Assembly (NCBI GenBank): GCA_943704425.1
Contig: CALSCP010000372.1
Location: 1 to 56,560 of the forward strand
Direction of reading: 5' to 3'
DNA: 56,560 nt
DNA from: Ministeria vibrans ATCC 50519
Taxonomy: Eukaryota > Protista > Filasterea
Position numbers and translations under genes: made by a program. Within the stretch, counting starts at the first letter, position 1. Each line of letters starts with the position of its first letter. Below the pieces are notes generated by a model, which searched no databases, was not told the DNA's origin, and saw only the letters and a program-made list of their open reading frames with translations. Below, one piece after another: positions 1-52,030 of the stretch.

Positions 1-56
1 GGATTGAGTGTATATCTCAAGCATAACCTTCCTAATGACACACCATGCCTTTTTAC

Positions 57-1587
<1,531 letters not shown>

Positions 1588-1844
1588 GAGAAAGTCAAAT
1601 AAAAGTGCAATAATTTGCATTCAGCATTGGATCAATCAATTCGCGATTGATTTTCAAAAAGTTGGCCCTCTCGATTAATGTTGGGCCAAGCGAAAAAAAA
1701 CATTCATATAATAATAATAATAATACCCAACATAAGTCGACTGATACTTGATAGGGTGACGAGTTGACGAATGACAAATGACAAGTGACAGCAGACACAC
1801 GAGCTTGATGAATCATTATTATTCGATTTGTACTATTATACTGT

Positions 1845-2925
1845 TCACTTGATAAATTTTGACATGAATTTGCGATGAAAATCGGAGCGCAGCGTGTCGT
1901 TGATAAAGCGCTTCTCGTGAGACTCTGCAACGCCACGCGTGCAGTTCTTGAAGACCACGTCGTCATCCCAGCGCCGTTTCGCTCCAAACGACGACGATGC
2001 GCCTGCTGCAGCTGCGGCTGAGGCGTCGTCCTGGTTCAGCAGTGGGTTGCCTTGTAGCAGTGATTCTTGGCGCACGCGCTGTGTTTCCGCTGCTGCTTCA
2101 GCCAGTTTTTCTGCCTTTTCGCGCGCGCGCTCAGCCTTGATCTTCTCCAGTTCACGCATGAGCGCCTCGTGGTCATCTTCGTCGTCGTCACTGTCACTCT
2201 CACTGTCACTTTCCTCTCCACCCGTTGCTCGCACTGGCCCATTCGCGCCCGCTCCACCGCGACGCCCATCCACTCCATTGTCCTCCTCCTCCCCCTCCTC
2301 CCCTTCCTCCTCCACCTCCTCATCGTCGTCGTCGTCGTCATCTGCATCCAATGCTGCTGTTGCCTCGTCCACCAGTCGTAGCCGCTTGTTGTCATGGCTG
2401 TCGTCTCTGTGGTCTACTAATGCGTTTTGCTTCGAGGCGTTCCTCAAATGCTCCAAAATGTCCTCTACAGCAAAACAACACACACACAACAGGTCAGACA
2501 AGTCCGACTCCATGGCAAACGCACCGTCGTCTTCGCCACGGTCTCTCTTCTCCCGCACAATCCTCTCGCGCTGCTCAAGCTCCTTGCGAAAGTCACGCAC
2601 AGCCAGCTCGTCGCTTGTGCCCTGGCCCGGACGGCGTTCCTGCCAGCGAGTCAAAGAGAAGAGGAAACGAGAAAAAAAAAAAAAAAAAAAAAAAAAAAAG
2701 ACGACGTTTCAGTGGTTGCTGAGACGCGTCTGGGGATGTGGGTGGGAGGGAGTGCAGGGAATGGCAACGGGCGCATTGGCAAGGGCAGCAGCAGTCGGCA
2801 AAGGGCACCTTGAGCGTCAAGTGATGAGGCATGTCTTTGACACTGAACTGTTTGGACGCCGCGCTGTTTCGCGTCGTCTTGCCACCCTGCGCAGGTGTCC
2901 ATGTTGGACGATGTGCTGTCGTCAT
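1845..2925 (-). CDS. CWC15: Spliceosome-associated protein CWC15; spliced
   Basis: N-terminus [15 protein letters not shown]...[16 protein letters not shown], acidic middle, C-terminus [13 protein letters not shown]...[20 protein letters not shown] are the Cwf15/Cwc15 signatures. Confidence 0.95.
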
Positions 2926-3111
2926 TCTAAAGCAAAGAAGTTTGTTTTATAATAGTTTATCATTATATCATATTAATAATTATTTATGATTTATCTGTTG
3001 CTTATAATACTCTCTCTCATTTGACATTTCTCATTTCTCAAAGTTTTTGACTTTTTGTAATTTGCTTAGTGTCACTATCGTCGCTTGCGACCGCCTTTGC
3101 TCAATATCAAG

Positions 3112-9428: not shown

Positions 9429-12400
9429 ATGTCGGAACGACAAACCCCGCCACAACCGCAACATCCGGCGAGAGCGTCTCCCACGCGGCCTACAGCGCCC
9501 TCGGCGTCTCCGACAGCGCCCACCCCCGCCCCGGCGTCGGGCACAGCACCGCGGATATTGTTCCATCGCGGTGGCGTTCCCGTCGTGTTCCGCCAGTCGC
9601 CCTCTAGCGCCCCGCCCGGTCCCCACAGCGCCGCCTGTCCCCTCCACGTCCACCACGGCCACCCTCCCCACGGCCATTCGCACGCCCACCACCCCCACAG
9701 GCCCGCACAGCCACACATGCCGCCCACATCGCGACCGCAGCCACCGCGCTCCGCCTCCGCCTCCTCCCTGCCCCCACCCGCTCCAAAACAACGCAGCGCC
9801 ACAAGTATGATCCCCTCCTCTCCTTCCCACTCTACCCCGCTCCTTTCCTCTGGCCACCCGCTTAAGAGCATCTCACCGATTTTCCTTTTTTTTTTCTCTT
9901 CTCTCTCTCTCTTGACCTTCTTAGTCCTCAAAATGAGCCCTATTCTGCTTGTGGACCACGGCAACGACGGTGCTACCATCAGTTGGGAACACCCCGATCC
10001 CCAAAACAACGGCCAGTGGGAGTTTAGCGTTGAGGTGCGATCGCATTTTGCCACCGAACGAAAACTGCCGGAGTTTGTGGCACTCACCAGCGACGCCTGC
10101 ACCATGTCCTTTGGTCCTATGAAAGAGACGGAGACCTCGACAGTGATATCACCATCATCACCAGCATCGCCATCGTCGTTGTCTTCATCGACGGTTGCCA
10201 GCAGCGCTCCCAATGGCACCACAGTCAGAAAGGAACGGTTGCTGTGCACCGCCAAATTGTGCTTCCACATTCGACCCGGCCGTGAGCATCACATTCGCGT
10301 TCGCGCTCTTCTTGCAAAGTCGTCCAACAAAAGTACTGGTGATGCTGTCGGACAAGCAAGCAATGGTATCATTGACACGCGTACATTTTAATTCTGTGTC
10401 GGACTCGGATTGATTTTATGTGTGTGTCTGCGTTATTTTTTTTTTTCATTTCTTTTTTGCAGTTGTCATGTTCACAAGCAAACCCGCTGCTCCCGATGCA
10501 CCTCTCTCAATGGAACTGACGAGTCGAACCAAGAACACACTCACGCTCAAGTGGCCGCCCGTCGATCACAACGGCGACGCACTCAGCGCATACGAATTGT
10601 GGGGTTGCGACGTGAGCGACTGCGACAACAAAAACGACGCTGTTGTTGCTGATGAGGACCGCTACCCACTTGACAAATTTGTGTTGATCTGGACGGGTCT
10701 TGCGACGTCACAAAAGGTCAAAGAGATTGGCCTGAGCAGTGGTGGTGGAGAGGGGAAGGAGGGTGAGGAAGGCGGCGTTCGGTTGCGACCGTGTGGCACT
10801 TATGCGTTCCGATTGCGTGCCTCAAACTCGCTTGGTTGGGGCCCATTTGGTGTTGTAAGTGCGTTTACGACGTTTGCTGCGGCTCCCGATGCGCCTCTTG
10901 CGCCGCGCATTACCGCATGTGATGCGCACAGTATTGTCTTTGAATGGGACCCTGCGTGGGACAATGGGGCGCGCATCACTCTCTACGAGGTGCAAATGAA
11001 ACGCCATCATATCGACGAGCTCAGCGGAAGCGACAAGAAGGCGAAGAAAAAGTCGTCGGGGTCGGCGTCGTTGTCGTCGGTGTCTTTGTCGGGCGCGCAC
11101 ATGAGCTATGAGTCATGGGAGATTGTCTATGTGGGGTCGGATCTGCATGGACGCGTGGACCGTCTGCCGCGTTGCACGTCGTACCAGCTGCGCGTGCGCG
11201 CAACCAATCAGCGTGGTGTGGGACCGTGGTGTCAACCGGTTTCTTTGGCAAGCACGACGCGCGAGGCGCCGGGCGAGCCCCGTCGCTTGGGTCTAGTGGG
11301 GGACGCGCGTGTGGGTGAGATTGATGTGGGCTGGGAGGCGCCTCGCGATTTGGGTGGCTTTGAAGAGGAAGAGGACAGCAAGGGGAGCGGAGACCAGGGC
11401 GGGCACAAGCCCACGCTGTGGTATGTGTTGCAGTCGGACGATGCAGCGGGCGGTGAGTTTGTCAATGTGTACACAGGCTCCAACACGCAGTGTGCCGTCG
11501 AGCGGCTCACGCCTGGCCGTACCTACCGCTTTCGCGTTGCGTGTGCGCTGTCGCCCACGGCTCAGCTGGGTAAATGGTCTGCAATTGCCGAGTGTGCATC
11601 GCTTGCGACTGCTCCGCTGGCACCCTCGGGTGTCGCACTGGTCGAAATCTCAGCGTCCTCCATGAAGATCGTCTGGGATGCGCCCGTCTTGGACCCACTG
11701 GCGCCCGTGACGAGCTACCATGTTGTGTTTATGGATCGAGTGAGTGAAGAGACGCTCTTCGAGGACACGATTCCCGCCAGCAAGGCACTGGTGTCCTTTG
11801 AAGTGAACGAGCTGTGTGCCGCACACACGTACGGCGCCATGATGGCCGCGTGCAACAGCACCGGCGAGGGGCCCATGTCGCCGCTAGTGGAGGCGCGTAC
11901 GAGCCCCGCGGCACCCGAGGAGCCTCACGAGCTGGCACTGGTGTCGGCGGCGACTGCCTCGTCCGCTGTGCTTACCTGGAGTGTTCCGTACGACAATGGC
12001 TCGCCTGTGTCCGACTACCGCTGTGTTGTGACTCCCCACGAGAAATCGTTTACCGTCGAAATGGTGCACGAGCCTGTGCCCCAAGTGACCCTCTCGGGTC
12101 TTGCACCGGCCACCGAGTACAGTGTGTGTGTGCACGCAATCAACAACTATGGCACATCGGTGGCCTCCGAGCCACTAGTGTTTCGCAGCGACGTGTCTGC
12201 GCCCGGAGCCATTGATCACCTTCGGGTTGTGTCGCGCGACGAGACCTCGCTCGAGTTTGAGTGGAGTGCACCCGCTCACGACGGTGGCAGCCCCGTACGT
12301 CGCTATCTACTGCACGTGTCGCCTGCTCCTGCTGACGGTGCCACCGAACTGGCTGTTTTCGAGGCGCGGGCGCAACTGGACGGACTCATTGCGGCAACGT

Positions 12401-13533
12401 CCTACACGGTGCGTGTCGAGGCGGAGAACGAGCGAGGACTCGGGCCTCGCTCGGGACGTGTGGTGGCACGCACACTGGCACCACGACCCGCGCGCGCACA
12501 GGTTGAGGTACAACGCGTCACGCACAGTTCAGCGCGCCTGTCGTGGTCTATGGAAGCGAATGGCACTGGTGGTGGCGAGGCACTGAGCTACGAGGTGTTT
12601 GTGGCAAAGAGCGGCGAGCGACGACCACGCAGTGTCTATGACGGAGTGGAGCGACAGTGTACGGTGGGTGAGCTGCAGCCGCGCACTGTGTATGGGCTCT
12701 GTATTGTTGCGATTGGTGAGCGTGGGCGTGGTGAGCCGTCTGTTGCTGAGTTTGTGACGGCGCCTGTACCACTGCCGGCTGTGGCACAGGCGCCGACCTA
12801 TGTGCGCAAGGCGCGAGTGGTGCGGTGGCGACTCAGTAAGAAGGACGCGAGTGTACATATGCAGTACTGTGTGACGCGCCAGCGACGACACGGCTGGACG
12901 CATGTGGTGCGAGATGTGACCACGGACGAGCCACTGACGCGCATGGATGTACATCGTGTGTGGGAAGTGGAGAGGGAACGTGAGGGTACGGCTGTGGTGC
13001 AAGAGTTGAGTGGGGAGGTGAGTGAGTGTGCGCTGGATGGCACAGACGAGGAGGTGGAAGGCACACGCTGGCGGGTGCGTGTGATTGAGGTGGCCACAAC
13101 ACGCAAGTGGATGGTGGTGGGAAGAGAAGATGGAACCGGTCGAGGGGAGAAGAAGGCTGAAGAGGAAGGGGAGGAGGAGGAAGAGCCGGAGGAGGAGGAA
13201 GCGGAGAGTTGCGAGAAGGGAGAATGGATTGTGGAGGGCCGAGCAGAGCGACGGGAAGGACCTTGGAGTGATGCGTGTGTGGTGACTGCGGCGGTGGCTG
13301 AACCAGCTGAAAAGGCTGTCGCTGCCGTCAAGATGGAGCGGCTCCCTGAGACGCATGAAGAGGTTGCGCCCGCTCCCGTCATGACGCCAGTCCCTGCTTC
13401 CCAAAGACCATTGAAACAGAGCGCGTCTCCTGTCGACAGCGAAAAAGAAGCCGATGGAAATGGACTTGTGGTGGCACTCGTTGCGCTCGCGGTGTTTGTC
13501 GCTCTTGTCGCAGCGTTTGTACAACTTTTATGA
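9429..13533 (+). CDS. FNDC3-like protein: Pro/His-rich N-terminus, tandem fibronectin type III domains, C-terminal transmembrane anchor
   Basis: Repeated FN3 units (W.PP..NG..I..Y.....L.P...Y.FR.RA.N..G.GP), no signal peptide, hydrophobic C-terminus LVVALVALAVFVALVAAFVQLL; architecture matches animal FNDC3A/B. Confidence 0.8.
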
Positions 13534-15110: not shown

Positions 15111-15114
<4 letters not shown>

Positions 15115-15829
15115 AATTCATCTTTGGTCAGCTGGACGGGGCAATAACCAGGCTGAAGGGGAGCGACTGGAACGCCTCTCTGCTTCAAATGACACACAAA
15201 GGGCTCAAGACGCAATTGTGCCTCCGTAGGATCATTCCACTGTTTCCCGCTCCACAGTCGCTCGGCGACGGCACTCGAGCGAGGCCACACGACCGTCATA
15301 AGGTTATCCGCACTAATCTGCTCGCCCCATGCACACGCCTCGCCTCCAAGCACGCGCGCGATGGCACGCGCATCCGTGATATTAAAACAGGGCGCGCACA
15401 CACACTCACCCGACGTGTAGTTGCACGTTCCGTTGGTCAGAGGGTCTTGCACATACATCTCCTGCCACGACACTGTCTGGTCATTCAGATACCAGTGGTC
15501 ACTCTTGACTCCGTAGAATCCCATCTCAGCGACATTGGTCATATTCGCCCAGTTCCAGCTTGGCCAGAGCCACATTTGAAGAACCGTCGAGTGACTAAGG
15601 AACGCCGGAGGACCTGTCGGATTGCTCTTGCTCGTTCCGTAGTGGTCAAATACCTCTTGCCAGTGTATCGATTTCTAAACCCCCAGTATATCAGAAGAAG
15701 CAAAGTAGAAAGAGAAAGAGAAAAGGGTGGGAAGCACACAGACGGAGATAGAAACAGACAGAGAAGAGTGAGAGACAAGAGAGACGGGGACGGAGATAGA
15801 GAGAAAAAACTTGAAATGCTGAGTGATTG

Positions 15830-15921
<92 letters not shown>

Positions 15922-17113
15922 GCTAATAAGTACCTTCCCCATCCGCTGTGCAATCTCCTGCAGGCGCCACAAATAGTACCTTACAAGCGCCTTGTAATCG
16001 CCTGGCGCCATCCCATGTGTCTCCATCCATTCCCGCACATGCACACTCTCATTCCAGCACCCAAACGATACTTCATCGCCCCCTAAGTGCATATAGTCAT
16101 CCGGGAATACCGTTGTGATTTCGCTCAGTAGTTTCTCCACAAAGACAAAGGTACTCTCTTGAGTCTATGCAAAAAAAAAAATACGTCATAAAGAATTAAA
16201 TCTGTTGTATCAGTGGCCCTCTCTTTGTAACAAAAATGCACCAAAAATTGCAAATAAAACTATTGAGGGAGAGTGGGTTTCGTACTGGATCGAGAACGTT
16301 TCCATTTTCGCAGGAGAAGAGATGAGGGTAACCGGCGCGAAAGGACAGTGCGTGGCTGGGGGTGTCAAATTCAGGGAGGACACGGATACCGCGGTTGTGT
16401 GCGAGCTGGACGAGTTGGCGCAGTTGCGCGCGCGAGAGAGTCGCGGACGGGGAGAAGGCACCGCGCGCGAGCAAGGGCAGTGACTCGCTTTGAAACGCCA
16501 CTGACTGATCGTCACTCAAGTGGAGGTGGAGCACATTGAGTTTGTTGGTTTCCATGGCGTCTAGCATGGTGCTGAGAGTACTCATGGGCAAAAAGTGTCG
16601 CGCACAGTCGAGCATCAGACCGCGGTGGGTAAACCGCGGCGCATCACGAATGCGAATTGGCGCCGCGGCAATTTGCTTCGATTCTGCGTCCACCAACTGC
16701 GAGAATGTCTCAAGACCACGTAGAGCACCCCATACAGTCGGTGCGGTGAGAGTAGCCGTCGCCGACGAGGCCACAACGAGCTCATACGACTCGTCAGCGC
16801 CAACCTGCAACGTTTCGTTTGCACTCGTCACCCGCACGTCCAGCACAAGGAGTGCCTCGACACCAGCATGCAACCAGTCGTTGTCAATGTTGCCTGCTGT
16901 CCCATACCGAGCAAAGATGCGCTCGTTATACCGCGCAAACGCCTCTACGAGGACCGCCGAAGAGTGTTGTGTTGCACGGAACGAAAACGTCTTCTCGTCG
17001 AGCTGTAGCGACGAATTCCCCCATTCCACGGCCGTAGGCATTGGCCACAGTGACATTGCACATGGCAGGAAGCACCCAATGAGCACAAGCACAAACATCC
17101 AAGAAGAGACCAT
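15111..17113 (-). CDS. Beta-hexosaminidase (GH20), secreted/lysosomal; spliced
   Basis: Signal peptide then LWPMP; TVWGALRGLETFSQL, DAPRFTHRGLMLDCARHF, RVLPEFDTPSH, HLGGDEV, GGEACAWGE, WPRSSAVAERLWS. Confidence 0.95.
15832..15919. repeat. (AC)n microsatellite in hexosaminidase intron
   Basis: Direct reading. Confidence 0.95.
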
Positions 17114-17198
17114 TGACAAACAAAAAATAGTATAATAATAACACCAACAGATTTACTATTCATTATTCATCCATTATTTATTCCTTCGTCTCTCTGCT

Positions 17199-30214: not shown

Positions 30215-31878
30215 ATGCCACCGGACTGTCCATGTTCCTCTTTTTCAAGCAGCGTTAACAAACGCTTCTATCGAGGCATCGTGCTGCTGTTGGTCGTTGT
30301 AGTGATGTCTCTGTTTGTGATTTGGGGTGCGAGAGATGTCCCATTTCAATCAGTGTCACTTGCAACATTTAACGTTCCTGTGAATGAGACGCTGACGACG
30401 TCCACAGACGTCGAGGGTGCAGCCACGAGCAGCAGCATCCTTGTTTATCAAAATCAAACGGGCTATGTGGCGTACACACCCTCAGGTGGCTGGAACAATC
30501 AGAGGATATCGTTTGAGTTTGCGCTGTGCGTTGCACATCTTCTCAATCGCACTCTTCTTGTCCCTCCCGCCTCTCCACACCCGCCCTCTTTGGTGGACCA
30601 GTCGTCCTTGCGTACTTCCAACTTTTCCGGGTACGACCTTGTGCCAGCAAGCGAACTGATGAGCGTGTGGGACTTTTTGGATCGAGAACAAATTGAAAAG
30701 GTGCGAAAAACGAGAGAAAGTGAGTTTTATTTATTGGTGACTGATCGTAAACGGTAGATGAACCCGATTGTCGATATGGGGCTGGAGTGCCATCCGCCGG
30801 GTCAAGGACAGGCTGAGTGTCTCCGCAAGCAATACGGGTCGGTCTTTCGTGTCTGTCATGATCGCAGAAACGGTGTTTGGACGGATCGTTTACCCGAGCC
30901 AGGTCGGAGAAGAAGATCCATGCATGTCCCACGATTTCTCATCGGTCATCTATTGCACAGATTCCATTTTATTGCATGACTTTCCCATTCGCACCTACCC
31001 GGGCGACAAGCCGCACTGCACTACTCTCGAAGACGAAGCATTCTACAAAGAAAAGACTTTGCCGCTTGTGCGCGGTCTCATCGACGAACTCGGTCCAGTC
31101 ACAGACCGCGTCATTTTGTTTGACGTAACTACCATATTCTCTTCAATTTTAATCGCTTTCTCGTCTCGTATTTTTCCTTATTTGAGAACGCAATTGGTGT
31201 CAAACCTAACTCATTTGTTTGGTCCTTTTTAAAATTATGTAGGATCGCAGTGCATTTGCTGATCTTCGGTTCCACCGTCCACACACCTTTTACGTGTACC
31301 AACGGCTGTTGACCACACACAGTGTTTATGCGCCATTTCTTCTCCAATGTGCGGAAATTCTCCTGATGGAGTTTAGGCTGTTGAGAGCGCGTGAAACATA
31401 TGTTGTGCCCTTCAATGCGATTCATTTGCGGATGAAGGACCGTGCCAAGGGCACAATGCGAACGGTGATCGAGTCGAAGATGAAACTGAAGGATCTCTCA
31501 CTGCCACTGTTTGTCGCAACCAATGTGGATGTGGCGAAGGAGGATTCGGAAAATCGTGCACACGTTCTTGAAGTGCTGAAACAGGTGCTGGGACCCGATG
31601 CACCGCTGGATCGAGTGTACTTCTCCAGTGAGAGCGAGCGAGTGAGGAAGATAATTGAGAAGCGGTACAAAGAGAGTCAGCGGAGCGACATTTGGGGAGC
31701 AGTGGATCAATTGGTGTCGGTGTGGGCGGATGATTTTATTGGGTCGCTCCAGAGCACTTTTGCCATGTTTGTGTATCGCCAGAGAGGCCTGTGGGGTCAG
31801 ATCGGTTGGCGACGCACCTCCGCCATTGAGTGGTTGGGTGCCAGGCGAAACCCCCCTTTGGATGAGCGGGATTTTTGA
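30215..31878 (+). CDS. O-fucosyltransferase-family (POFUT/O-FucT, GT-B) type II membrane glycosyltransferase, copy 1; 3 exons
   Basis: N-terminal TM; GGWNNQR..FE.A...A..LNRTLLVPP, FNAIHLR, LFVATN, DQLVSVWADDFIGS..STF. Confidence 0.82.
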
Positions 31879-31932
31879 AATAATAATTATTAGAAGAATG
31901 TTGTACGTACGTTGGATGTATGAATGAAAGTG

Positions 31933-31958
31933 TATTATTATTATTATTATTATTATTC

Positions 31959-32001
<43 letters not shown>

Positions 32002-32056
32002 CATTATTATCATTATTATTATTATTATTATTATCATTATTATTATCATTATTATT
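31933..32056. repeat. (TAT)n/(TATCAT) trinucleotide repeat between the tandem glycosyltransferase genes
   Basis: Direct reading; explains the poly-Ile ORF. Confidence 0.95.
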
Positions 32057-32203
32057 TTGTAAAAAATAATTTACTTACCATTTTAATGTTCAGATAACTA
32101 CAACAACATTCGTAATTTTCCAGTTTTGTGCGGTTTTGAAAACGCGATCAACAATAATTATAATAATAAAAATAATAATCATCGTCACATTTTTTTGTTA
32201 CTG

Positions 32204-33846
32204 ATGCCGTTTGGCATCCCCTTTTCGACGTACCGGCCCCTTTTGGTCGCCATAGTTCTGTTCCTGTCACTGACAGTGATTTGGAACGGGAGCAATGAGA
32301 ATGAGAGAGCGTTTCAATCAGTGTCAGTCTCACACAATCGTCTCACCGAAACCAAGCGCGTGGACGCACATGGCAGCATGCCTACTCATGATAGCCGTCA
32401 GAGCCAAGTGGGCTATGTGGCGTACGGACCCTCAGGTGGCTGGAACAACCAAAGAATCACGTTTGAGTTTGCGCTGTGCGTTGCACATCTTCTCAATCGC
32501 ACTCTTCTTGTCCCTCCCGCCTCTCCACACCCGCCCTCTTTGGTGGACCAGTCGTCCTTGCGTACTTCCAACTTTTCCGGGTACGACCTTGTGCCAGCAA
32601 GCGAACTGATGAGCGTGTGGGACTTTTTGGATCGAGAACAAATTGAAAAGGTGCGAAAAACGAGAGAAAGTGAGTTTTATTTATTGGTGACTGATCGTAA
32701 ACGGTAGATGAACCCGATTGTCGATATGGGGCTGGAGTGCCATCCGCCGGGTCAAGGACAGGCTGAGTGTCTCCGCAAGCAATACGGGTCGGTCTTTCGT
32801 GTCTGTCATGAACGCAGAAAAGGTTTTTGGACCGATCGCTCAACGCCAGGTTACAATTAATTTTTATGTCTTTTTCTTTCTTTCTTTCTTATTATTATCA
32901 GTAATAATTAATGTTGTACATTATTCTCGTCCTGCGTTGCTTTGTAGTGTTGAGTTCATTGTGAAATTTCCCTTACTCTTCTTTGCGAGTAGGTTCCGTT
33001 CTTCTTCAAAACTTTGCCTATCGAACATACCTCAAGGACAAGCCGCACTGCACCACTCCCGAAGACGAAGCATTCTACAAAGGAAAGACTTTTCCCCTAC
33101 TGCGTAGTGTCATTGACGAACTTGGTCCTGTCACGGAGCAAGTCATCCTAATCGACGTAAGAAACCATAAGAGAATCATATCACGTCATAACAAATCACC
33201 TGTTTAGGACCATAGTGCGTTCGCGGATCTTCGGTTCCACCTTCCACACACGTATCACACGTACCAACGTTTGTTGACCACGCACAGTGTTCATGCGCCT
33301 TTTCTTCTCCAATGTGCGGAAATTCTTCTGAAGGAGTTTGGGCTATTGAATGCGCGCGACACACACGCTGTGCCCTTCAATGCGATCCATTTGCGGATGT
33401 ACACCCGTGCAAAGGTCAAAATGCGAACCGCGTTTGAGCCTGAAACGAGACTCAAGGATGTCTCACTGCCACTGTTTGTTGCAACCAATGTGAATGTGCG
33501 GAAAAACTTAAAAAATCGTCAAGGAGTACTTGACTTGCTGGAAGAGGTGCTGGGACCTGGCGCAAACCTGGATCGAGTGCACTTCTCTACTGAAAGTAAG
33601 CAAGTGGAAAAAATGATTGAGGAGCGGTACAGAGAAAGTCAACGAGGCGACATTTGGGGCGCAGTGGATCAAGTGGTGTCGGTCTTAGCAGATGATTTTA
33701 TGGGATCGCCCCAGAGCACTTTCGCCATGTTCATCTATCGCCAGAGAGGCATTTGGGGTCAAGTGGGCTCACGACGCACGTCTACCATTGAGTGGCTGGG
33801 TGCGAGGCGGAACCCGCCCTTGGATGAGCGGGATTTTATGAAGTGA
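32204..33846 (+). CDS. O-fucosyltransferase-family glycosyltransferase, tandem copy 2; spliced
   Basis: Same motifs as copy 1 and the same C-terminus (IEWLGARRNPPLDERDF). Confidence 0.82.
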
Positions 33847-33938
33847 AAGAAAGAGAAAGAAATGTTGAATGAAAATTGATGTGAAAATATTTATCAATGT
33901 ATTTATGATAAGACTCTTCATTATTCTTTCACACTTTT

Positions 33939-36900
33939 TTACGGCTCACGATAGACAGCACAGCGAGCAGCATTGGAAAGGGAAGAGCCAGAGCCTTGAT
34001 TTGTGCTTGTGATGGACATGTAGTACGTGAAGTCATTTTTTGTGTGATAATCCTAAAAACAAAGACGAACAGTGAGAGTTAGGCTCTCGCTCTTTCTTTC
34101 GTGTATAGTCTCTCTCTTTTCTTTGGGGTGGGCTTACGCAAGAAGAAGTACTACCGCATTCAATTGCAACCTGTTTGCGGAACACAGGCATACACGAGCC
34201 AACCGACGAAAGATCTTGAGTGTAGTGGCCGCCACCACCACCGCCAAATCCAAGGAAAGAGTACCCTACGAGAACAAGTCAACTCACGCGCCTCACACAC
34301 ACTCTCTCTCAGTCTCGCGGTACCACTCCAGAGACTGACCCAGCCTGAGATAGGGGCAGAAGGAATGGAACTGGACATGGAGTGCGCAACCATGACGGCC
34401 TTGGTGGACGTGACAACACGGCAGCGCGACACAGCCGCTGCCGGATTGGTAAGTGTACCCGTGTCCACTGAGAGAGCAGTGAGCCAGTACGCATAGTCAG
34501 AGCCCGTAAAGTAATCGCAACGTGTCGGACTGTCACATTCGGTAAAGGGAATGGCGCGGAAGGTCTTTAGGCACGAGTTGGGACCACCCAGGTCCACCTG
34601 GAACGTAATTCCATCGCCACCAAGACCGTACATAAACGAGTAACCTGTCCAGAGCGAAGTGTATCCGGACGGAGTCGGTGGGATTTGGTTGCTCTGCGAG
34701 TGTCGTGCAAATGTCGCTCCACTGCTCGTCCCGGCTTGCCCTTTACTCCCGGTCGCGCCAGTCGCTCCTTTTTGACCTAATACATTATACATAATGAGAT
34801 TGAGTATAAAATAAATCAAGACAACACACACAAGATGGTAAGTATGCCATTACCCGTTGCTCCTTTGGGTCCAGTGATAGACTGTCCGTTTGCACCAGCG
34901 GCACCCTATAGAAATAAGCGTGAAGAAAGAGAGAGAGTGTGTGTATGTGTGTCAGTGAGTGGATGTGCGTGTGTATGTGTGTGTTGATTGAAGGACTAGC
35001 TGCATTACAACTCAGAAGAAGGGTTAATTTCGGTTTGAATGACGAGTGCGGCAAAAAAAACTGGAGAAAACTCAATTGTTTCCCCTCACACTCCCACACA
35101 TATGTATACCTTAGCGCCTTTTGCCCCGGTAGGTCCAACAACGGATGCGCCAGTAGCGCCTGATGAGAAGAGATCATAAGGAGAGAGGAAAATGGATATG
35201 GCAACAAGCAAGGCAAAAATGAAGAGTAAAATATCAAGAAAAGAGAGAGAAACAAAGACGTGATAGAGAGAGAGAAAAAAAAAAAAAGAGGGGAGACAGA
35301 TGCACAACAATAGGGAATGAAGAATGACTTCACCCGCATACCTTTGGTGCCTTGAACGCCCTGCACTCCCTTGTCACCCTAAATAGAGAAAAAACGAAAT
35401 ATATGATTGAGAGGGAGATTAAGGAGGATAAACAGTTAACAATTGTAAACATGGAAAGTTGGTGACAAGTGAGACCACACTCAAATAAAAGATACCTTCT
35501 GACCAGTGGGCCCAGTTGGCCCAACAATGGAAGCACCAGGAGCACCTAATGAATGGAGAGAGAGAATGAATGAGTTTACTGGCAGATGAATCAAGTATGA
35601 GAGGAAAGGGGGAAAAAAAGTAATGAAAAAGAGAGAGGACTACATTCAAGAAGGAGAAAAAAGGATTTCATGAAGACGATAATAATAAAACACAACAGAA
35701 ACTCATAATCATATAAATTGTTATGTTGATGGTTGGTTGAGTCTCACCTGCTACGCCTTGAATGCCTTGAGTGCCCTGAGCGCCACGATCACCCTATAAG
35801 AACGATAATAATTGTAGGCATGATTAAAAAAAGCATCGTTCGATTTGAGGGCGACGGAAATAACAAACTAGGGTAGGAGATAAAAGTGTCGCATACCTTC
35901 GGTCCGGTTGGTCCGGTAGGGCCAACAATGGAAGCACCGGGAGCACCTGAGTATGATACAAAGAGAGAGAGAGAGGTAATGAGGGGAAAAATGGGGTGGA
36001 ACACACAAAGTGAAACAAAACATAATTCAGAAATGAAAGACAAGTGGAAGACGTCAACCAGTGAGCCCGTTGAGCAACAATCACATGAAAAAAAAGTGAA
36101 TTCTGATGGCAATTGACAATGACAATAACAACTCACACACATACACAGACAAGACGGAGACAGAGAGAGACTGACAGATACACAGAAAGAGACACGATAA
36201 AGCAACATTTCCATTACCTTTAGGGCCTTGTGGGCCAGTAATGGACACGCCCTGGACACCTTGTATTCCCTGACTGCCACGCTCGCCCTAGTAGTACGAT
36301 AGTCCAGTGAGACAAAATAGAATAAGAAAAGAACAAGGCGAAACGACAATACTAATAGAAATTAATTATTATTCACTTTTTCTGCATCACAAACGAGGGG
36401 GGGGGTTGTAATTATGGGGTCGTTAAAATGATAATGGGCTCGAAAATTGTCATTCAAGGAATAAAATGAAAATACAACACAGGCTCACACAGCGCAAATC
36501 GATACTTTTTGTACATACCTTGGGGCCAGTGGGTCCGACAGGGCCCACAATCGAGGCACCAGTAGCGCCTGATGAAAGAAAAGAGGGGAGGATGAGAGAA
36601 AGAAAGAAGGGAAAAGACAGACAGAAAAGAAGATTGCAAATGAGCTGAAGAGAGCCAACAAATATAATGTGTGAGTGTTGTACCTGCGACACCTTGAGCT
36701 CCTTGCAAGCCCTGGTCACCGCGATCACCCTAGGACAAAACAAAAACCGTATTAGACTAATTCTACTTCATTCGTATTGTCAGCAATAGAATTGATAACA
36801 GATTGGATAGTCAACGTTTCTGCGTTTTTTTAAGGTAGAACTCAAAGGGTATCAGCCGATATGCACAATCGCTAATAAAATGTGCGTTACACCTTCCAAA

Positions 36901-39767
36901 AAATTAGATGTCTCGCAAAAATTAAACGCGCAAACACCACCCACAATAAAACAAAATCAACCTATACCTTTTCGCCACGCAATCCAGCGCTTCCAGTACT
37001 CCCTTTCGGGCCTACAATATAAAATCAACAACAAATAAAACACATTCACTCGTACATTCATTCACTCATTCAACCACTCAAACACTCACCCACCCCCATA
37101 TCAAGTCTTACCTGTTGCGCCAGTATCGCCCTTGATAGACTCACCGGGATCTCCCTTATCGCCGCGTGGTCCCGCAACGCCCTGTGATCCCGACAGATCC
37201 TCAAGATAGGTCCATCCCACAGAGTTTCCTTCCCAGACATAGAGTTGTGCACCCGGATTTGACACAAGTGCAAACTCGCCAATCTGCACCGGAAGACCTT
37301 CGTCTGAGACGGGATTGGTTGAGACCATGTCAGCGATAGACGCATACACAATGACAATGGCAAATCCTTGTCCTGTGTCGCCTTTCTACGCCACGTCAAA
37401 AACAAACGGAACCCATCGCAGAGAGTACAGCAATTGGGTGAGTGTGCGTTGTGTTTATTTCATATTTTTCTTACGCTGCCTTTGACTGAATCTCCTTTGT
37501 CTCCCTTGAGCTGTCCAGAGTTAAGACTGCACCACGTAATTGATTAGTAGTAAGCACGACATCGCCTCTCTTACCTTGAAACAAGGGTTGCAACGGAATC
37601 TTTAACGGAGACAATGGCTGCGGCATTAGCGGATACATTGGCTTTGACCTGTTCGACTGTGGATTCATCGACGAGGTTGAGCTGAAGAAGCGCCAGGAGA
37701 CGCACGAGAGTCGCCTCGTCGACGACTGTCGAGCCAATCTGGAGGTTGTTGGTTGCACGAAGGGTCGCACTTGCAACTGTGTTTGTGGCGGTGATGGAGG
37801 AGGCACTCAACGTGTTCGCGGTGAGTGCACCAAGAACAGTCACGGCGTCCGCGTTGATGGTGCTTGTATCGATAGCAGTGCTATAAACGGTGCCGCCTGC
37901 GTGTACGTCTTTGGCAACGTGCGACTCGTGCGACGAGATGTTGTGTACTGTCAGTAGGTTGGTGATGGACGCAGAGGCAGCAGTGAGGTCTGCGGAGAGC
38001 GACAGAGACGCAGCCGAGAGGGACGATGCCACTGTCATGGTCTGCGTTGAGATGGAGGTCGCTGTGAAGGCGTTGGTGGTGAACGCAGTGGACAAGTCAA
38101 CGTTGTTGACGCTCAGTGAGGTGGCACTAAGCGACGCGATGGAGGCTGAGGCGGCCGTAAGCGAGCCTGAGAGGGTCACCGAGGCAGCGGACACACTTGC
38201 GGTGGTGACAGACTGGCTTGTGGTAAGACTCGTCGCTTGCATGGCGCCCGTAATGTCAAGCGAACCACCGGCAATGGCATTGGACACAGTCAGCGTGACA
38301 GCAGTGAGCGTGTCGGACACGGTCGCATTGGTGGCACTCACAGTGCCTAGAGTTGACGAATGAGCGACGCTGAGTGAATCACCCGAGAGCGCACCCGATG
38401 CAGTGATACTTGAAGCGGCGAGTGCGCCCGACACACTCGCCGACTGACCACTAAGTGTATTCGCCGAGAGCACGCCCGTAAAACTGGCCGAGACACCCGA
38501 CACAGAGTTGGTGACGGTAAGACTCTGGGCGTTGATGGCGCTGGTAAACGAGGCAGTGGTGCCGGAGATGGACGCCGCTGAGAGAGACTGGGAAACACTG
38601 AGTGAGTCGGCCGAAATGGCACCCGATGCATTCACAGTGGAGGCAGTGAGTGAGCCCGACACACTCGCTGACTGAACACTAAGTGTGTTAGCAGAGAGAG
38701 CACCCGTGAAACTGGCCGAGGCGCCTGACACGGCGTTGACAACAGCAAGGCTCTGGGCACCGATAGCGCCGGTAAACGAAGCGGTGACGCCTGAGACAGA
38801 CGAAGCCGAGACAGACTGATTAACGGTGAGCGAGTCGGCGGAGAGCGCACCCGACACGCTCGCCGACGCGGTGGTGAGGGACGTTGCGGAGACGGTCGTG
38901 CCCGAGACAGACGAGGCAGAGACAGACTGAGTGACGGTGAGCGAGTCGGCGGAGAGCGCACCCGACACACTCGCCGATGCGGTGGTGAGAGACGTTGCGG
39001 AGACAGTCGTGCCCGAGATAGACGAGGCCGAGACAGACTGAGTGACGGTGAGCGAGTCAGCGGAGAGCGCACCCGACACGCTTGCTGAGACAGTGTCGAG
39101 GGACGTTGCGGAGACAGTTGTGCCCGAAATAGCACCGGTGATGTTCAGGGAGTCGGCCGAGGCGGCACCTGTGAGCGACATGGACTGGCCGGTGAACGAG
39201 GCGGCGCCTACGTTGTTCATGAAGGTCGCCGAAGCGCCTGTCACGTCTGCGGTCGACGCAATACTGGCCGCTGCAACGGCACCCGTGAACGATCCCGTCT
39301 CGCCTGTGAGCACAGTCACACCCAGCGAGGTGATTGTTGCCTCATTGGCGACGGCGAGGATGTTGGTTGCGACGTAGGGAGCCGCGAAGGAGTTTGCCGT
39401 GAGCGACTCCTTCAGGATCAGGTGGTCCGCTGTGATGTTCGTCGCGGCAAACGCAACCCGGTCGATTTCAACACGAACCCCATCGGCGCCCGCGCCAATG
39501 TGTACGACGTCGTCACCCTCTTTGCGGAAGTACGCCGCATTCCTGTGCAAACGTACGACAGACCCAGAAAAAAAAAAAAAAAAAAAAGTTGNNNNNNNNN
39601 NCGTATGGTTAGACTGTTAGTCAATCATCTCCGACATTGTCTCGATTCCGAAAAAATGTTGTGGTCACACTAAAAAGATAAGAAGAAATGAAAGGAACTG
39701 ACTCAAGTTGAGCATGGCAGGTGCTCAGCACGACCATGAGGGTCGCAATACCAGCAATGAAGTTCAT
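33939..39767 (-). CDS. Secreted collagen IV-like chimeric fibre protein: signal peptide, Ser/Ala/Thr repeat shaft, coiled coil, interrupted Gly-X-Y helix, C-terminal NC1 (two C4 repeats); about 16 exons
   Basis: Exon 1 MNFIAGIATLMVVLSTCHAQLE joins in phase to a 2 kb exon (39543-37575); phase-compatible GT-AG microexons give about 70 Gly-X-Y triplets; NC1 reads FARHSQ...LWTGYSFM...DLGGPNSCL..F...PF.EC....C.Y....YAYWL...SRC and AHSM...LWSGYSFL...QDLSSVGSCM..F....IEC....C.Y...ARCAVY. Confidence 0.92.
38400..39130 (-). repeat. Coding tandem repeats in the collagen N-terminal shaft: 111 bp (37 aa) units and 228 bp (76 aa) higher-order units
   Basis: gcgagtc(g/a)gcggagagcgcacccgacac recurs at 38830, 38941 and 39052; cccgacacactcgc at 38427 and 38655. 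Confidence 0.9.
39592..39601. other. Assembly gap (10 N) inside collagen intron 1
   Basis: N run next to a poly-A tract. Confidence 1.
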
Positions 39768-40033
39768 GGAACAAACACAGAAAAAAAGATAATTCGGATT
39801 TCGGTTAATTCGGTACTGGAAAAATATTCTGTCAGTTGTCAGAAAATGGCCGAATTAAAACAAGAAAGAAGCGAACGATATAACTTTTGCGGTCAGCCAG
39901 GTGTATAATGGCGAGTGCGATATCGGGGAGTTCTTCGGGCAGTGACACCAATGAAAAAGCAAATGCTAAGTAATCAACGTCACATTAATTAATGTCATAA
40001 AAATTCAATAAAAATTAATACGTCGTCTTTACT

Positions 40034-42348
40034 TTAGAGCTCGTCTCTCTCATTCCCATTCAGCTGTGCCTCACACTCGGCCGCACAGTTCTTCTCAATA
40101 CACTCTCGAGTAACACAGGCATTTTGTCGCACACAGGGCCCGCAACCCATAAAAAACTGATCGCGCAAAGGAGAGCCTTCGGGTCCCTTCAGAGAAGCCA
40201 CATCACGACTCACGGAGAGCTTGGCCACAAAGCTGTAGCGTGAGCCAATGTACGAGGGAGACGGTGGCCGTGCACTGTGTGGGATGGCACCCTGAAAGAT
40301 GGTGGAGCGCGAGAACAGCGGGTGGACCTGGAACAAACAGTGGTGTGTGAGTAAAGTGTGTCATTCACAATCCCCTTACTTGTGCAATCAGTTCGTAATT
40401 TTGTAGTGCAGCACACGAGTCATCTGAATCAACTGCCTCCGGTGTATCGCACTCAATGGGTCGGTTGTAAAAGGCAGTTTCACCATAGTCATTGGCGGTC
40501 CAGTTTGGAGTCAGATACCTAAGCTAAAAATCAGTACACGATAGAGAGGTCGAGCGAGAGAGAGAGAGAAAACATACAAAAGGAAGGTCCACTCATCCTC
40601 ATTTCTATTGCCATCCTCGTGGATCCGCGTGTCGTCGGTCATGCGAATGAGATTACATGCGACGTCGTAAGGGTACCACGACTGGGCACTGTCGGGTGTC
40701 AGGTGGTTGATGAGCTTGAGGATCTTGTACCACATAGAGGTGGCCGTGAACTCACCAATCGGATACTATAAGTAGCAAAAAAAAAAAGTGATAGTTTAGT
40801 GAGTTAGAGTGGGTGAGTAATGATTGACACAGTGAGACAACGAATGAGACACTGAGTCAGAAACAAGTGACTGTACGATTTAAATACCTGAGCGATAAAC
40901 TGCACGTTGTCTGTCTCCTCGTCGGGATCGGACGGCTCGTCGTAGTTCCAAGGACTAAAGCGCTTAAGGTAAGAATGGAGCGTCTCAATCTCTTCAGGAG
41001 TAAACAGATTGTCGATGACTTGTAGACGACGGCCGTTGCGGTCTTTGACTTGCGAGTGGATGAGAGGTGCCACGTCAAAGGTTGCACTGTCGACTGAGTC
41101 GTAGGGTGGGAGGAGAGCAAAACGGCCCGATTGCGATGCAGTGTGTTTGGCGCTTTCGTCGCGTTTGAGCGACAATTCGCGTTGCTCGCGGTGTATGGCA
41201 AACGCAGTTGGTGAGCGCGTCAGACGCACAAACACAATAATCTAGCATTTGAATGGTCGTCAATCAGTCTCTCGTCAATCTCTCGTTTTTTTTGTACTTG
41301 AAATCGCTTTTGTGCCATGCTGGGAGGGCGAGGGAGCATGCTGATGCTGGCGTCCCACAGAATCGCACGGCCAGGAACCTATCATACACACACACAGACA
41401 CGACGACAAAGAGTCAGGGTCACTCAACTCTCTCTCACTCTTTTTTTTTTTCTGCGTCCTTAAAACCCCAATGGTGCACCATTTTAGTCATTCTCCCTTC
41501 TTTTGCGTACCGGGTGCACAGAGGCAGCCACTTCGTCGTCCCGATCAAAAAACAACGACTCGCCGTAGTGGTTGCGCTTCCACTTAGAGTTGAGGTACAC
41601 CATCATGTTGACCTCGTCGTCGTCGGACGACTCAGCACTCGCATAGTTCAATGTCAGGTCTCCACGTCGCACAACGTGCAAACGGCATGCATACGGCTAC
41701 GCGACAACAGAGTGAGAACCACAAAAACAAATCTCGCACATCTCCATCCAAATAATCGCGGTTTCCCCATTCACTGATTTGTAGTCGAAAATGCAGAGCC
41801 TGTTTCGCAGCAGGCTTTCTCTTACCAGGAGCTCTGGACCATCACCTTGGTACCTGCGCGCCGCAGCCTCGACGTCGGGCCAGATTTCCTCGTGAAACTG
41901 CTCCAAAGGCATTTCGTAGGTGAACGGGAAGCCCCACTCAATGGCGTCTGTCTCGTCAATGCTCTCGTTGAGCCGGCGCCACGCGTCCGCATAGTCCGAC
42001 TGAAGCCTCCACACGCCCTCTTCTTTGTACTGCGAAGCCAAAGACCGCCACAAAGCGAGACAGTCAACAGCGCGAACACTCTAAAGTTTTTTTTTCCTTC
42101 TTCTCTATTTTTCTCTTTCTTTGTTTGTTTCTTTCAGATCTTTGCGGCGATCGCGTTCTTACTTGTTCCATCCAGGCACGGGTCTTCTTTAACGACACGA
42201 CATTGTCGTAGACGGCAATCCTTCTTGCATTGCCTGGTTCCGTTCCATCAATGTTTTTGTCCCACAGCTGCAGGACCTTTCGGGGTTTGCCCTGGACAGC
42301 AAGCGCCACGCACACCACAAGTGCGATTGTGACGAAGGTCTTATGCAT
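40034..42348 (-). CDS. ER-resident tandem 2OG-Fe(II) oxygenase (prolyl-hydroxylase-like): degenerate N-terminal domain, intact C-terminal domain, RDEL; 8 exons
   Basis: Signal peptide MHKTFVTIALVVCVALAVQG; domain 1 VYLNSKWKRNHYGESLFF...VPGRAILWD without HxD/H; domain 2 TRIHEDG...TFLLYLTPNWTANDYGETAFY...IFQGAIPHSARPP...RYSFVAK; C-terminus NERDEL. Confidence 0.85.
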
Positions 42349-42453
42349 CAAAAAAAAAAAAGAATTGAATTGATCAGTCAATAGTGAATAGAATACGAGG
42401 AGTAATCAAGAAAAATAATTATATAGATTTCACCTAATTCATTGTAACTATTC

Positions 42454-50568: not shown

Positions 50569-52030
50569 ATGTCTTCCAGTATGCTTAATGGCGAAAAGGA
50601 GGAATTTGAAACCCGTCAGTCGAGAATCACGTTTTCAGCGGTGGTAAAATGGATTGCCCTTCTTGTGCTGGCTCCCGTCGGCATCCAGCCAGTGTACATA
50701 TCAACTGCGGGCCAAAGGGGCTCCATCAAAGTGCTTCTCCCTCTGGGACCACTTGGATGGACGCTCTTTTTTCCGTGCGACTGGGAAAAATATGCGCTGA
50801 GGTCGAATGAGGTTGACACGCGCTGCTGGACAATCGTGTTCTTGTTCATGATGCCCGTCTGGATCCAATATCACGCACACCATGACGTTTGCGAAGCGGT
50901 TCATCGCCAGTCTGCGTTGCTGCAGATGCTGTGTACAATTGGCGCCGTTTGCAACGCCTATTTCGTTCTACTCCTCGCCTTCTGCGGCGTCCAGCCTCTC
51001 TATACCGCGTGCCTTGGGTCGCACACGACTATTAAAGTGTACTTTCCCATGGGTCCTATTGGTTGGACGTTGGTTTTTCCTGCTGACTGGAAGAAGCTTT
51101 CGCAACGCTCAGACGCAGAAGAAGAGCACACGCCAATCATTACTGTGTTTGTTGTTCTTCCTGTGTGGGTTCAATGTGCCACACTCCAAGACGACACGCA
51201 ATTTCTTCTCACGGAAAGCCCCGGTGTCCCTTGCAACTATTACGGAAGCATGGCAAAACCCCAGTCTGAAAAGTCCATCGCTCAGCCGTCGCTTGTTGTT
51301 GACGAAGGGTTCGTCGCAGGGACCACGCTCTCAGAGCTGTCCGACATCGGGTGGACTGTAAAGCATCCCGTTAACCCTCAACTACGTGAACCGCCAGTTG
51401 TGGTTTGTATTGCAGGCGGAACCAATGCAAGCGCGGAATTTGACAACTTGTTGCCTTTGCGAGCCGCCGACGATTCACCGTCCTCCCAAGCTCCTCTGAT
51501 TGAATGGGGTTCGATCAAGCAAGAAAACACAAGCACACCTCTTCTTGGCGTCGTAAAATGCGTAGCTCAAGCGCCTCCTCTTGAATCTGGTAAGAGGAGG
51601 AGCAAGGATAATTAATTAAAAAAAACACTAGTTTAGCCGACCCCCTCTCTCCTCGATGTAGTTCTCGTTGACGTCGCCAACCTGACGCCTCTGAACGACG
51701 AGCTCAAAGCGCGCACTGCGTCTGCATCTTTTGCATGGCATTTGGTGTGTAAAGCAGTGGATGCAATGATTCTAGTTGTGAGTCATTTGTCACTTGATGA
51801 ATTGTGTCTGCTCGAGAGCGCTGCGGAATCATTGGGAGCCCACCGCGTGTTTATTATTCATTTGGCTCAACACAAAAACGCAGAGCCTGTCACCGAGTCT
51901 GCCGCCTCTTCCATTGCTCTACAAACTTTGCAGGTGTGTTCTTTTATGTGTGTGTGTGTGTGTGTGTGTGTGTGATTATTATTGTTGTAAAGAATTATTT
52001 CGAGGAATCATTCAGGANNNNNNNNNNTTT

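Follow-up and report, generated by a model that had tools for sequence, protein, structure and literature searches.

A collagen IV-like gene of Ministeria vibrans among secretory-pathway enzyme genes: candidate maturation cluster or ordinary neighbourhood

Collagen IV is regarded as a founding component of animal tissues and, to our knowledge, the genes of collagen-modifying enzymes in animals are not linked to collagen genes. A stretch of 56,560 nucleotides from the filasterean Ministeria vibrans ATCC 50519 (assembly GCA_943704425.1, contig CALSCP010000372.1, positions 1 to 56,560; hereafter the window) carries a collagen gene directly downstream of a gene for a 2-oxoglutarate (2OG)-Fe(II) oxygenase, and two transferase genes of the O-FucT family, here called A and B, converge on it from the other side. 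This arrangement raises the question of whether the fibre is encoded together with the enzymes that mature it, as a first-pass annotation had proposed, or simply has close neighbours. We found that the four genes are real, intact and adjacent, and that they most likely form an ordinary neighbourhood in a very compact genome and not a dedicated maturation cluster, a reading to which we give only just less than an even chance. If any neighbour is a true partner of the collagen, it is the oxygenase. We see a serious possibility, though one that stays clearly short of even when the rival explanations discussed below are added up, that the collagen is a substrate of the oxygenase. These degrees of confidence are judgements, not computed values.

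Gene models were built from GT-AG splice sites and reading phase, and individual exons served as queries in the database, family and structure searches. The spliced models place the genes exactly where the first-pass annotation had put them, with the same coordinates, the same strands and the same distances of 266 bp between oxygenase and collagen and 92 bp between collagen and the nearer transferase (Table 1). All four products are predicted to enter the secretory pathway, in keeping with the earlier description of every neighbour adjoining the collagen as a secretory-pathway enzyme.

The collagen gene has 17 GT-AG exons, all in phase, with a coding sequence (CDS) of 3549 nt for 1182 amino acids (aa). 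That the fibre is a collagen was borne out by two tandem C-terminal C4/NC1 repeats (PF01413, E 3.6e-28 at 34163-34831 and E 4e-8 at 34036-34278). An HSQ motif opens the first repeat, in exon 15, and the second has HSM. There are four Cys per C4/NC1 repeat, compared with six in an animal collagen IV found on a 3-kb metagenome contig; the first and last Cys of each NC1 half are missing (33939-34776), so that one disulphide per half would be absent. The collagenous region, interrupted by breaks of two residues, comprises about 60 clean Gly-X-Y triplets; residues at Y include 16 Thr, 15 Lys, 13 Gln and 3 Pro, and 14 Pro stand at X. Within exons 6-13, 50-nt exons alternate with others that range from 37 to 70 nt and include three of at most 46 nt. 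At 34854-36729, the mini-exons are for the most part an alternating series of two units with near-identical peptides, one of 46 nt (phase 0 to 1) and one of 50 nt (phase 1 to 0); the helix thus grew by duplication of a two-exon module, introns included.

Ahead of the helix, the shaft encoded by exon 2 contains 227 Ser plus Thr, 119 Ala, one Pro and no Cys, and is built of pseudo-repeats of 37-38 and 76 aa. No relative of the shaft exon was found by word search, which did not return the gene itself either, in phage records or in a pattern scan of 185,579 prokaryote genomes, and it matched no Pfam or PHROG family. The exon 4 knob resembles Lactobacillus phage tail-fibre genes (tblastn, E 1e-10, 42% identity over 98% of the exon) and PHROG tail-fibre families (E 4e-9 to 4e-7). 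Exon-wise Pfam scans detected no EGF domain in the fibre.

This architecture matches that of MvCN, the already published collagen IV-like protein of M. vibrans, and on this basis the collagen gene itself is not new. Published MvCN likewise has a long non-collagenous N-terminal domain of bacterial-like character, followed by a short collagenous part and a double C4/NC1 with HSQ (PMC5560861; bioRxiv 10.1101/2021.10.08.463732). Set against that description, our model differs in length (1182 aa instead of 1122 aa) and in repeats (about 60 clean triplets instead of 81 repeats). MvCN has been reported as the only NC1 domain outside animals (PMC5560861; bioRxiv 10.1101/2023.10.18.563013). The window collagen shares with collagen IV its two C-terminal C4 repeats and the HSQ at the start of NC1. 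However, it has neither a collagenous domain of several hundred triplets nor an N-terminal 7S domain, its N terminus being the 656-aa Ser/Ala/Thr shaft and the phage-type knob, and it has four rather than six Cys per C4 repeat. Nor is it one of a head-to-head gene pair: it is single, with the oxygenase gene in tandem upstream. The knob and its Gly-X-Y flanks match families of collagen-like phage tail fibres, and GPT-type triplets occur in the fibre, whereas its animal-type NC1 end sets it apart from phage fibres and bacterial fibres of the BclA type.

An assembly gap of ten N (39592-39601) lies within collagen intron 1, beside a run of T(20) and upstream of the CAG acceptor. It leaves the coding sequence intact, because the exon 1 donor and the exon 2 acceptor are compatible in phase: the donor is in phase 2, and exon 2 supplies the one base that completes the codon. 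The gap splits the oxygenase gene and the collagen signal-peptide exon from the remaining collagen gene and both O-FucT genes, and the oxygenase-collagen adjacency therefore depends on the scaffold join. The join might wrongly place the oxygenase gene and an unrelated signal-peptide exon beside the collagen, and such an artefact would fit both this separation and the ten N, which need not reflect the true gap length. However, the earliest Met inside exon 2 is residue 108, with no signal peptide, so exon 2 requires an upstream start and signal-peptide exon, and exon 1 supplies both in matching splice phase. Furthermore, local assembly typically fails at homopolymers such as the T(20) where the break sits. 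We consider the scaffold join plausible and the artefact very unlikely.

The oxygenase gene has eight GT-AG exons in phase (CDS 1683 nt, 560 aa). Its product has a hydrophobic signal peptide at the N terminus and RDEL directly before the stop codon, and by this combination of signal peptide and KDEL-type tetrapeptide it would be a resident of the lumen of the endoplasmic reticulum (ER). Two double-stranded beta-helix (DSBH) halves can be recognized. In the C-terminal half, HED, a distal His and an Arg occupy columns that are invariant across 16 relatives in the family alignment; in the N-terminal half, Y, S and M replace the H, D and H of the iron triad. The RDEL-bearing 2OG-Fe(II) oxygenase that had been placed upstream of the collagen is thus present with its HxD...H...R residues intact in the second domain. 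Exon by exon, Pfam matched only exon 3 to PF13640, at 19.2 bits, under the cut-off of 27. Sequence comparison of the exons with solved structures returned only chance matches and no prolyl 4-hydroxylase (P4H), prolyl 3-hydroxylase (P3H) or PLOD. An internal duplication (exon 3 against exon 6) was left unaligned by MAFFT and BLASTP, and it is the family alignment alone that points to it. The tail (40034-40160) packs six Cys and a CGPC motif into about 35 residues ahead of RDEL; a thioredoxin domain was considered for it and rejected, as the tail is too short. Animal relatives have an acidic stretch and then a helical tail in place of the Cys-rich tail, and most end without a KDEL-type sequence.

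A large search with the last oxygenase exon revealed 42 proteins, many of them of 540-670 aa and matching the exon twice. PF13640/PF13661 scored above threshold in nine of the ten full-length relatives scanned (41-69 bits), and all 17 full-length relatives whose N termini were inspected have a signal peptide. The relatives carry only PF13640, PF13661 and PF13759, without the P4H-alpha N-terminal domain or the PLOD glycosyltransferase domains, and tblastn matches them to exons 3-8 of the window gene at 40-60% identity. A profile made from 16 relatives collected 70 clusters, and every named one is animal, from comb jellies, homoscleromorph sponges, placozoans, cnidarians, echinoderms, hemichordates, lancelets and tunicates. 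Among these 70 clusters, for which only the 8000 candidates with the most profile words were scored, there is no name from vertebrates, protostomes, choanoflagellates or fungi, a result that is suggestive of absence of the family from these groups. Recent transfer of the oxygenase gene from one animal lineage was considered and rejected, as identity to all animal phyla is similar.

In structure, the AlphaFold model of a Trichoplax member (mean predicted local distance difference test score, pLDDT, 77.5) is closest to Tpa1/OGFOD1 (E 1.5e-11), followed by PHD2 and P3H1; each of these is a prolyl hydroxylase. Tpa1/OGFOD1, the RPS23 prolyl hydroxylases, likewise have two tandem DSBH domains of which one alone is catalytic. 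In contrast to the window oxygenase, it is their N-terminal domain that is active, they are cytoplasmic or nuclear, without the signal peptide and RDEL found here, and sequence identity is about 10-12%. The oxygenase and its neighbours also resemble in kind the ER-lumenal 2OG oxygenases and glycosyltransferases that act on Gly-X-Y, namely P4HA/PDI, P3H1/CRTAP/PPIB, PLOD1-3 and COLGALT1/2, and P3H1, one of the fold matches, carries a KDEL-type signal. Unlike these animal collagen enzymes, the window oxygenase has two DSBH halves and no P4H-alpha N-terminal, TPR or glycosyltransferase domain, and the window transferases belong to PF10250, not to GT25 as COLGALT does. No paper in the literature collection searched mentions an accession of a family member. 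Outside animals, the oxygenase is the first member of an uncharacterised secreted two-DSBH family with a prolyl-hydroxylase-like fold and, judging from its sequence relationships, is not orthologous to the collagen enzymes P4H, P3H and lysyl hydroxylase. The same rare distribution, animals plus Ministeria, is seen for the family and for the NC1 domain.

The first-pass annotation had named conserved linkage as a check on the proposed cluster, and this check came out negative. In Trichoplax, Corticium, Nematostella, Oscarella and Mnemiopsis, the 10 kb to each side of family members contain neither a collagen gene nor an O-FucT gene, which argues against both the four-gene module and an inherited oxygenase-collagen pair. 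A related metagenome contig of 1.5 kb (SCHR19-1, SAMN09406007; positions 77-796) encodes homologues of oxygenase exons 6-8 at 55-69% identity with the same intron positions, and nothing shaft-like, collagen-like or of the O-FucT family was found in the 739 bp downstream. In tblastx of five animal and metagenome loci against the window, the oxygenase gene alone was in common. The last exon of the homologue on this contig lacks the Cys-rich tail and RDEL. A word search with O-FucT A exon 3 found solely one metagenome fragment, 99% identical, from the same SCHR19-1 project in the ENA and another sample (SAMN09406036); taken together, the two matches indicate that both this organism and one of its relatives live in the environment sampled. 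When metagenomes were scanned with the NC1 exon, a single contig came back, the animal-type collagen IV mentioned above, which was useless for synteny. On it (positions 48-3026), an open reading frame (ORF) for ribosomal protein S23 is followed by a long intronless collagen IV ORF, which would be a chimeric transcript assembly or else an unusual bicistronic arrangement.

These data bear on the possibility that oxygenase and collagen form a two-gene unit, in which the oxygenase is the dedicated hydroxylase of the NC1 collagen, the two genes are co-regulated and inherited together from the filozoan ancestor, and the O-FucT pair is incidental. Such a unit would account for the tandem position on one strand with a 266-bp spacer, for a C-terminal half with intact catalytic residues in a protein with signal peptide and RDEL, and for a family fold nearest to prolyl hydroxylases. 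The named family members are all animal, which parallels NC1, with Ministeria as its sole known non-animal case (PMC13366479). However, the adjacency is kept neither in the five animal genomes nor on the related metagenome contig, the family shows no vertebrate or ecdysozoan name though both groups have collagen IV, and the join between the two genes crosses the assembly gap. Composition also speaks against the unit in one respect. The fibre had been said to offer hundreds of Ser/Thr as well as Lys and Pro in Gly-X-Y; this holds for Ser and Thr in the shaft and for the 15 Lys in Y position, but only 3 Pro occupy that position. We regard a two-gene unit as possible but rather unlikely.

On the other side of the collagen, the two converging O-FucT-family transferases of the first-pass annotation were recovered, both intact and both with a hydrophobic type II anchor near the N terminus. 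PF10250 is present in the first and last exons of both genes (whole-protein cut-off 31.5 bits): in A, exon 1 scores 32.6 bits (profile positions 1-50) and exon 3 25.3 bits (177-324), and in B the scores are 30.0 and 21.2 bits. Over 429 bp, comprising the 3' half of exon 1 and part of intron 1 (30460-30888 against 32410-32838), A and B are 97.4% identical, whereas exon 3 is 81% identical in DNA and 74% in protein. This pattern suggests one tandem duplication with a recent gene conversion tract, and we accordingly count the pair as a single adjacency event. An (ATT)n microsatellite occupies much of the A-B spacer (about 31900-32060). Both proteins end in ...DERDF (31860-31878 and 33825-33846), B with two extra residues, an ending that we take to be loosely like the RDEF of human POFUT1 and that may be coincidence. 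POFUT1 (GT65) is the best solved relative of both transferase ends, colinear and weak (E 0.014 and 0.45); it shares PF10250, and its N-terminal nucleotide-sugar motif and C-terminal motif align colinearly with the window proteins. It differs in being soluble with a KDEL-like tail, where the window transferases are type II anchored. In addition, POFUT1 acts on folded EGF domains, and the window locus offers no EGF substrate.

In the fuller version of a module, the oxygenase would hydroxylate the collagen and both O-FucT paralogues would glycosylate it, for example on Thr in Gly-X-Thr and on Ser/Thr of the shaft, and the genes would have been kept together. The lumenal nature of all the neighbours is consistent with this, as are the 16 Thr in Y position, the 227 Ser plus Thr of the shaft and a fibre that is in part of phage/bacterial type. 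Two pieces of background can also be taken in its favour: glycosylated Thr stabilises the triple helices of Riftia cuticle collagen, and BclA-type collagen fibres in Bacillus and Clostridioides are encoded beside glycosyltransferase or sugar genes. The window transferases, however, differ from those bacterial systems. They are eukaryotic and intron-bearing, and pattern scans with the O-FucT profile found no close relatives in the 185,579 prokaryote genomes or in IMG/VR viral contigs, so they are not of bacterial or viral type. Furthermore, their closest solved relative needs a folded EGF domain, the linkage is not conserved, and the four upstream regions have no common motif: no 7-9-mer was shared by at least three of the four, which is a weak test of co-regulation. 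We consider the full module improbable.

A number of observations favour ordinary adjacency. The genome is compact, with about 22-24 gene units in the 56.5 kb of the window and spacers of 105, 266 and 92 bp around the oxygenase and collagen genes; intergenic spacers of about 100-270 bp look normal for this genome. The other neighbours are functionally mixed (RCC1, ARMT1, ankyrin, leucine-rich repeat, formyltransferase, FN3 and GH20 genes). Secretory-pathway genes are not rare locally, since the window has further secretory or extracellular genes, an ORF with at least five FN3 domains (10420-13533) and a GH20 hexosaminidase gene (15111-17119). We also favour ordinary adjacency because neither collagen nor O-FucT linkage was found in the five animal genomes or on the related metagenome contig, because no vertebrate or ecdysozoan name appears among the 70 clusters while both make collagen IV, and because the relatives lack the P4H-alpha N-terminal and PLOD glycosyltransferase domains. 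The resemblance of the transferases to POFUT1, their closest solved relative, the lack of an EGF domain in the fibre and the mere three Pro in Y position point in the same direction. Of the substrate-plus-enzyme module originally inferred, the adjacency stands; the tests run did not support conserved linkage, a shared upstream motif or orthology of the oxygenase to the collagen hydroxylases, and the transferases are closer to POFUT1 than to collagen glycosyltransferases.

Several observations weigh on the opposite side. Since collagen genes are few here, a prolyl-hydroxylase-like ER enzyme directly upstream of one of them is unlikely by chance, at about 1-3% for any such genome pair by rough estimate. 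When the roughly 22 gene units of the window were shuffled, both enzyme units fell beside the collagen with p about 0.004, a naive and post hoc figure. The oxygenase family and NC1 both follow the rare pattern of animals plus Ministeria, and all four products are predicted to meet in one compartment. In other collagens, Thr and Lys in Y position, here at 16 and 15 sites, carry stabilising sugars or hydroxyls. Finally, the collagen gene is upregulated during aggregation of Ministeria (PMC13366479).

The four products can be placed in one scheme. A signal peptide would lead the MvCN-type protein into the ER, where the two NC1 repeats, by analogy with collagen IV, would nucleate trimerisation. 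A short, interrupted helix of some 60 triplets, with abundant Thr, Lys and Gln at Y, would join NC1 to the phage-type knob and shaft, giving a secreted fibre. The oxygenase, presumably retained in the ER through RDEL and with iron and 2OG ligands kept in its C-terminal DSBH half alone, would most likely hydroxylate proline, or another residue, of secretory proteins there. The membrane-anchored POFUT1-like transferases would add a sugar, probably a deoxyhexose, to Ser/Thr of lumenal substrates. Collagen may be among the substrates of these enzymes, of which gene order alone is not proof. A bolder version, which we find improbable, is that the locus preserves an ancestral maturation module of collagen IV: the two-DSBH family would be the original hydroxylase of NC1 collagens, still coupled to its substrate in Ministeria, and POFUT1-like sugars on Thr/Ser, not hydroxyproline, would stabilise the proline-poor helix.

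If the neighbours do mature the collagen, a eukaryotic collagen gene would for the first time be found linked to the enzymes that modify it, and an uncharacterised enzyme family spanning comb jellies to sea squirts would gain a function. Regardless of the module, the Ministeria oxygenase is the first member of that family outside animals. The cluster is a testable lead and not a finding, as none of the tests run demonstrates an action of the enzymes on the collagen. Expression has been followed over time in aggregating Ministeria, with a rise of the collagen gene (PMC13366479), and this published series makes the module hypothesis cheap to test.

Table 1. Genes, exons and spacers around the collagen gene, in window positions
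Feature	Positions	Strand	Details
O-FucT A	30215-31878	+	three exons, 30215-30719, 30961-31124, 31243-31878; 434 aa; type II signal anchor
O-FucT B	32204-33846	+	three exons, 32204-32669, 32993-33156, 33208-33846; 422 aa; type II anchor
Spacer	33847-33938		92 bp; converging stop codons of O-FucT B and collagen gene
Collagen gene	33939-39767	-	ATG 39767; stop codon 33941-33939
Collagen exons 15-17	33939-34776	-	34776-34324, 34265-34138, 34052-33939; last Gly-X-Y triplets and two C4/NC1 repeats
Collagen exons 5-14	34854-37011	-	ten mini-exons of 37-70 nt; interrupted Gly-X-Y region
Collagen exon 4	37112-37385	-	globular knob of ~60 aa between Gly-X-Y triplets; phage tail-fibre type
Collagen exon 3	37475-37526	-	first Gly-X-Y stretch, short and imperfect
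Collagen exon 2	37575-39542	-	656-aa Ser/Ala/Thr-rich shaft
Collagen intron 1	39543-39702	-	assembly gap 39592-39601 beside T(20) run
Collagen exon 1	39703-39767	-	ATG and signal peptide; phase-2 donor
Spacer	39768-40033		266 bp; oxygenase RDEL stop codon to collagen ATG, in tandem, both genes on minus strand
2OG-Fe(II) oxygenase gene	40034-42348	-	ATG 42348; stop codon 40036-40034
Oxygenase exons		-	42348-42163, 42029-41775, 41696-41511, 41378-41298, 41241-40888, 40765-40578, 40518-40380, 40327-40034
Spacer	42349-42453		105 bp between the ATGs of oxygenase gene and ARMT1-like gene, head to head

The gene beside the oxygenase gene encodes an ARMT1-like damage-control phosphatase (PF01937, E 1e-71). 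A second assembly gap of ten N (52018-52027) lies outside the candidate cluster. In animals, a gene for a Cupin_8/JmjC-type oxygenase (PF13621) adjoins the family gene or lies one gene away in Trichoplax, Corticium and Nematostella, which may be a conserved microsynteny of two oxygenase families across these three early-branching phyla; the window lacks a Cupin_8 gene. On Trichoplax DS985246.1 (3.40-3.44 Mb), at least five paralogues of the family stand head to tail, interrupted solely by a Cupin_8 gene and one unannotated gene.

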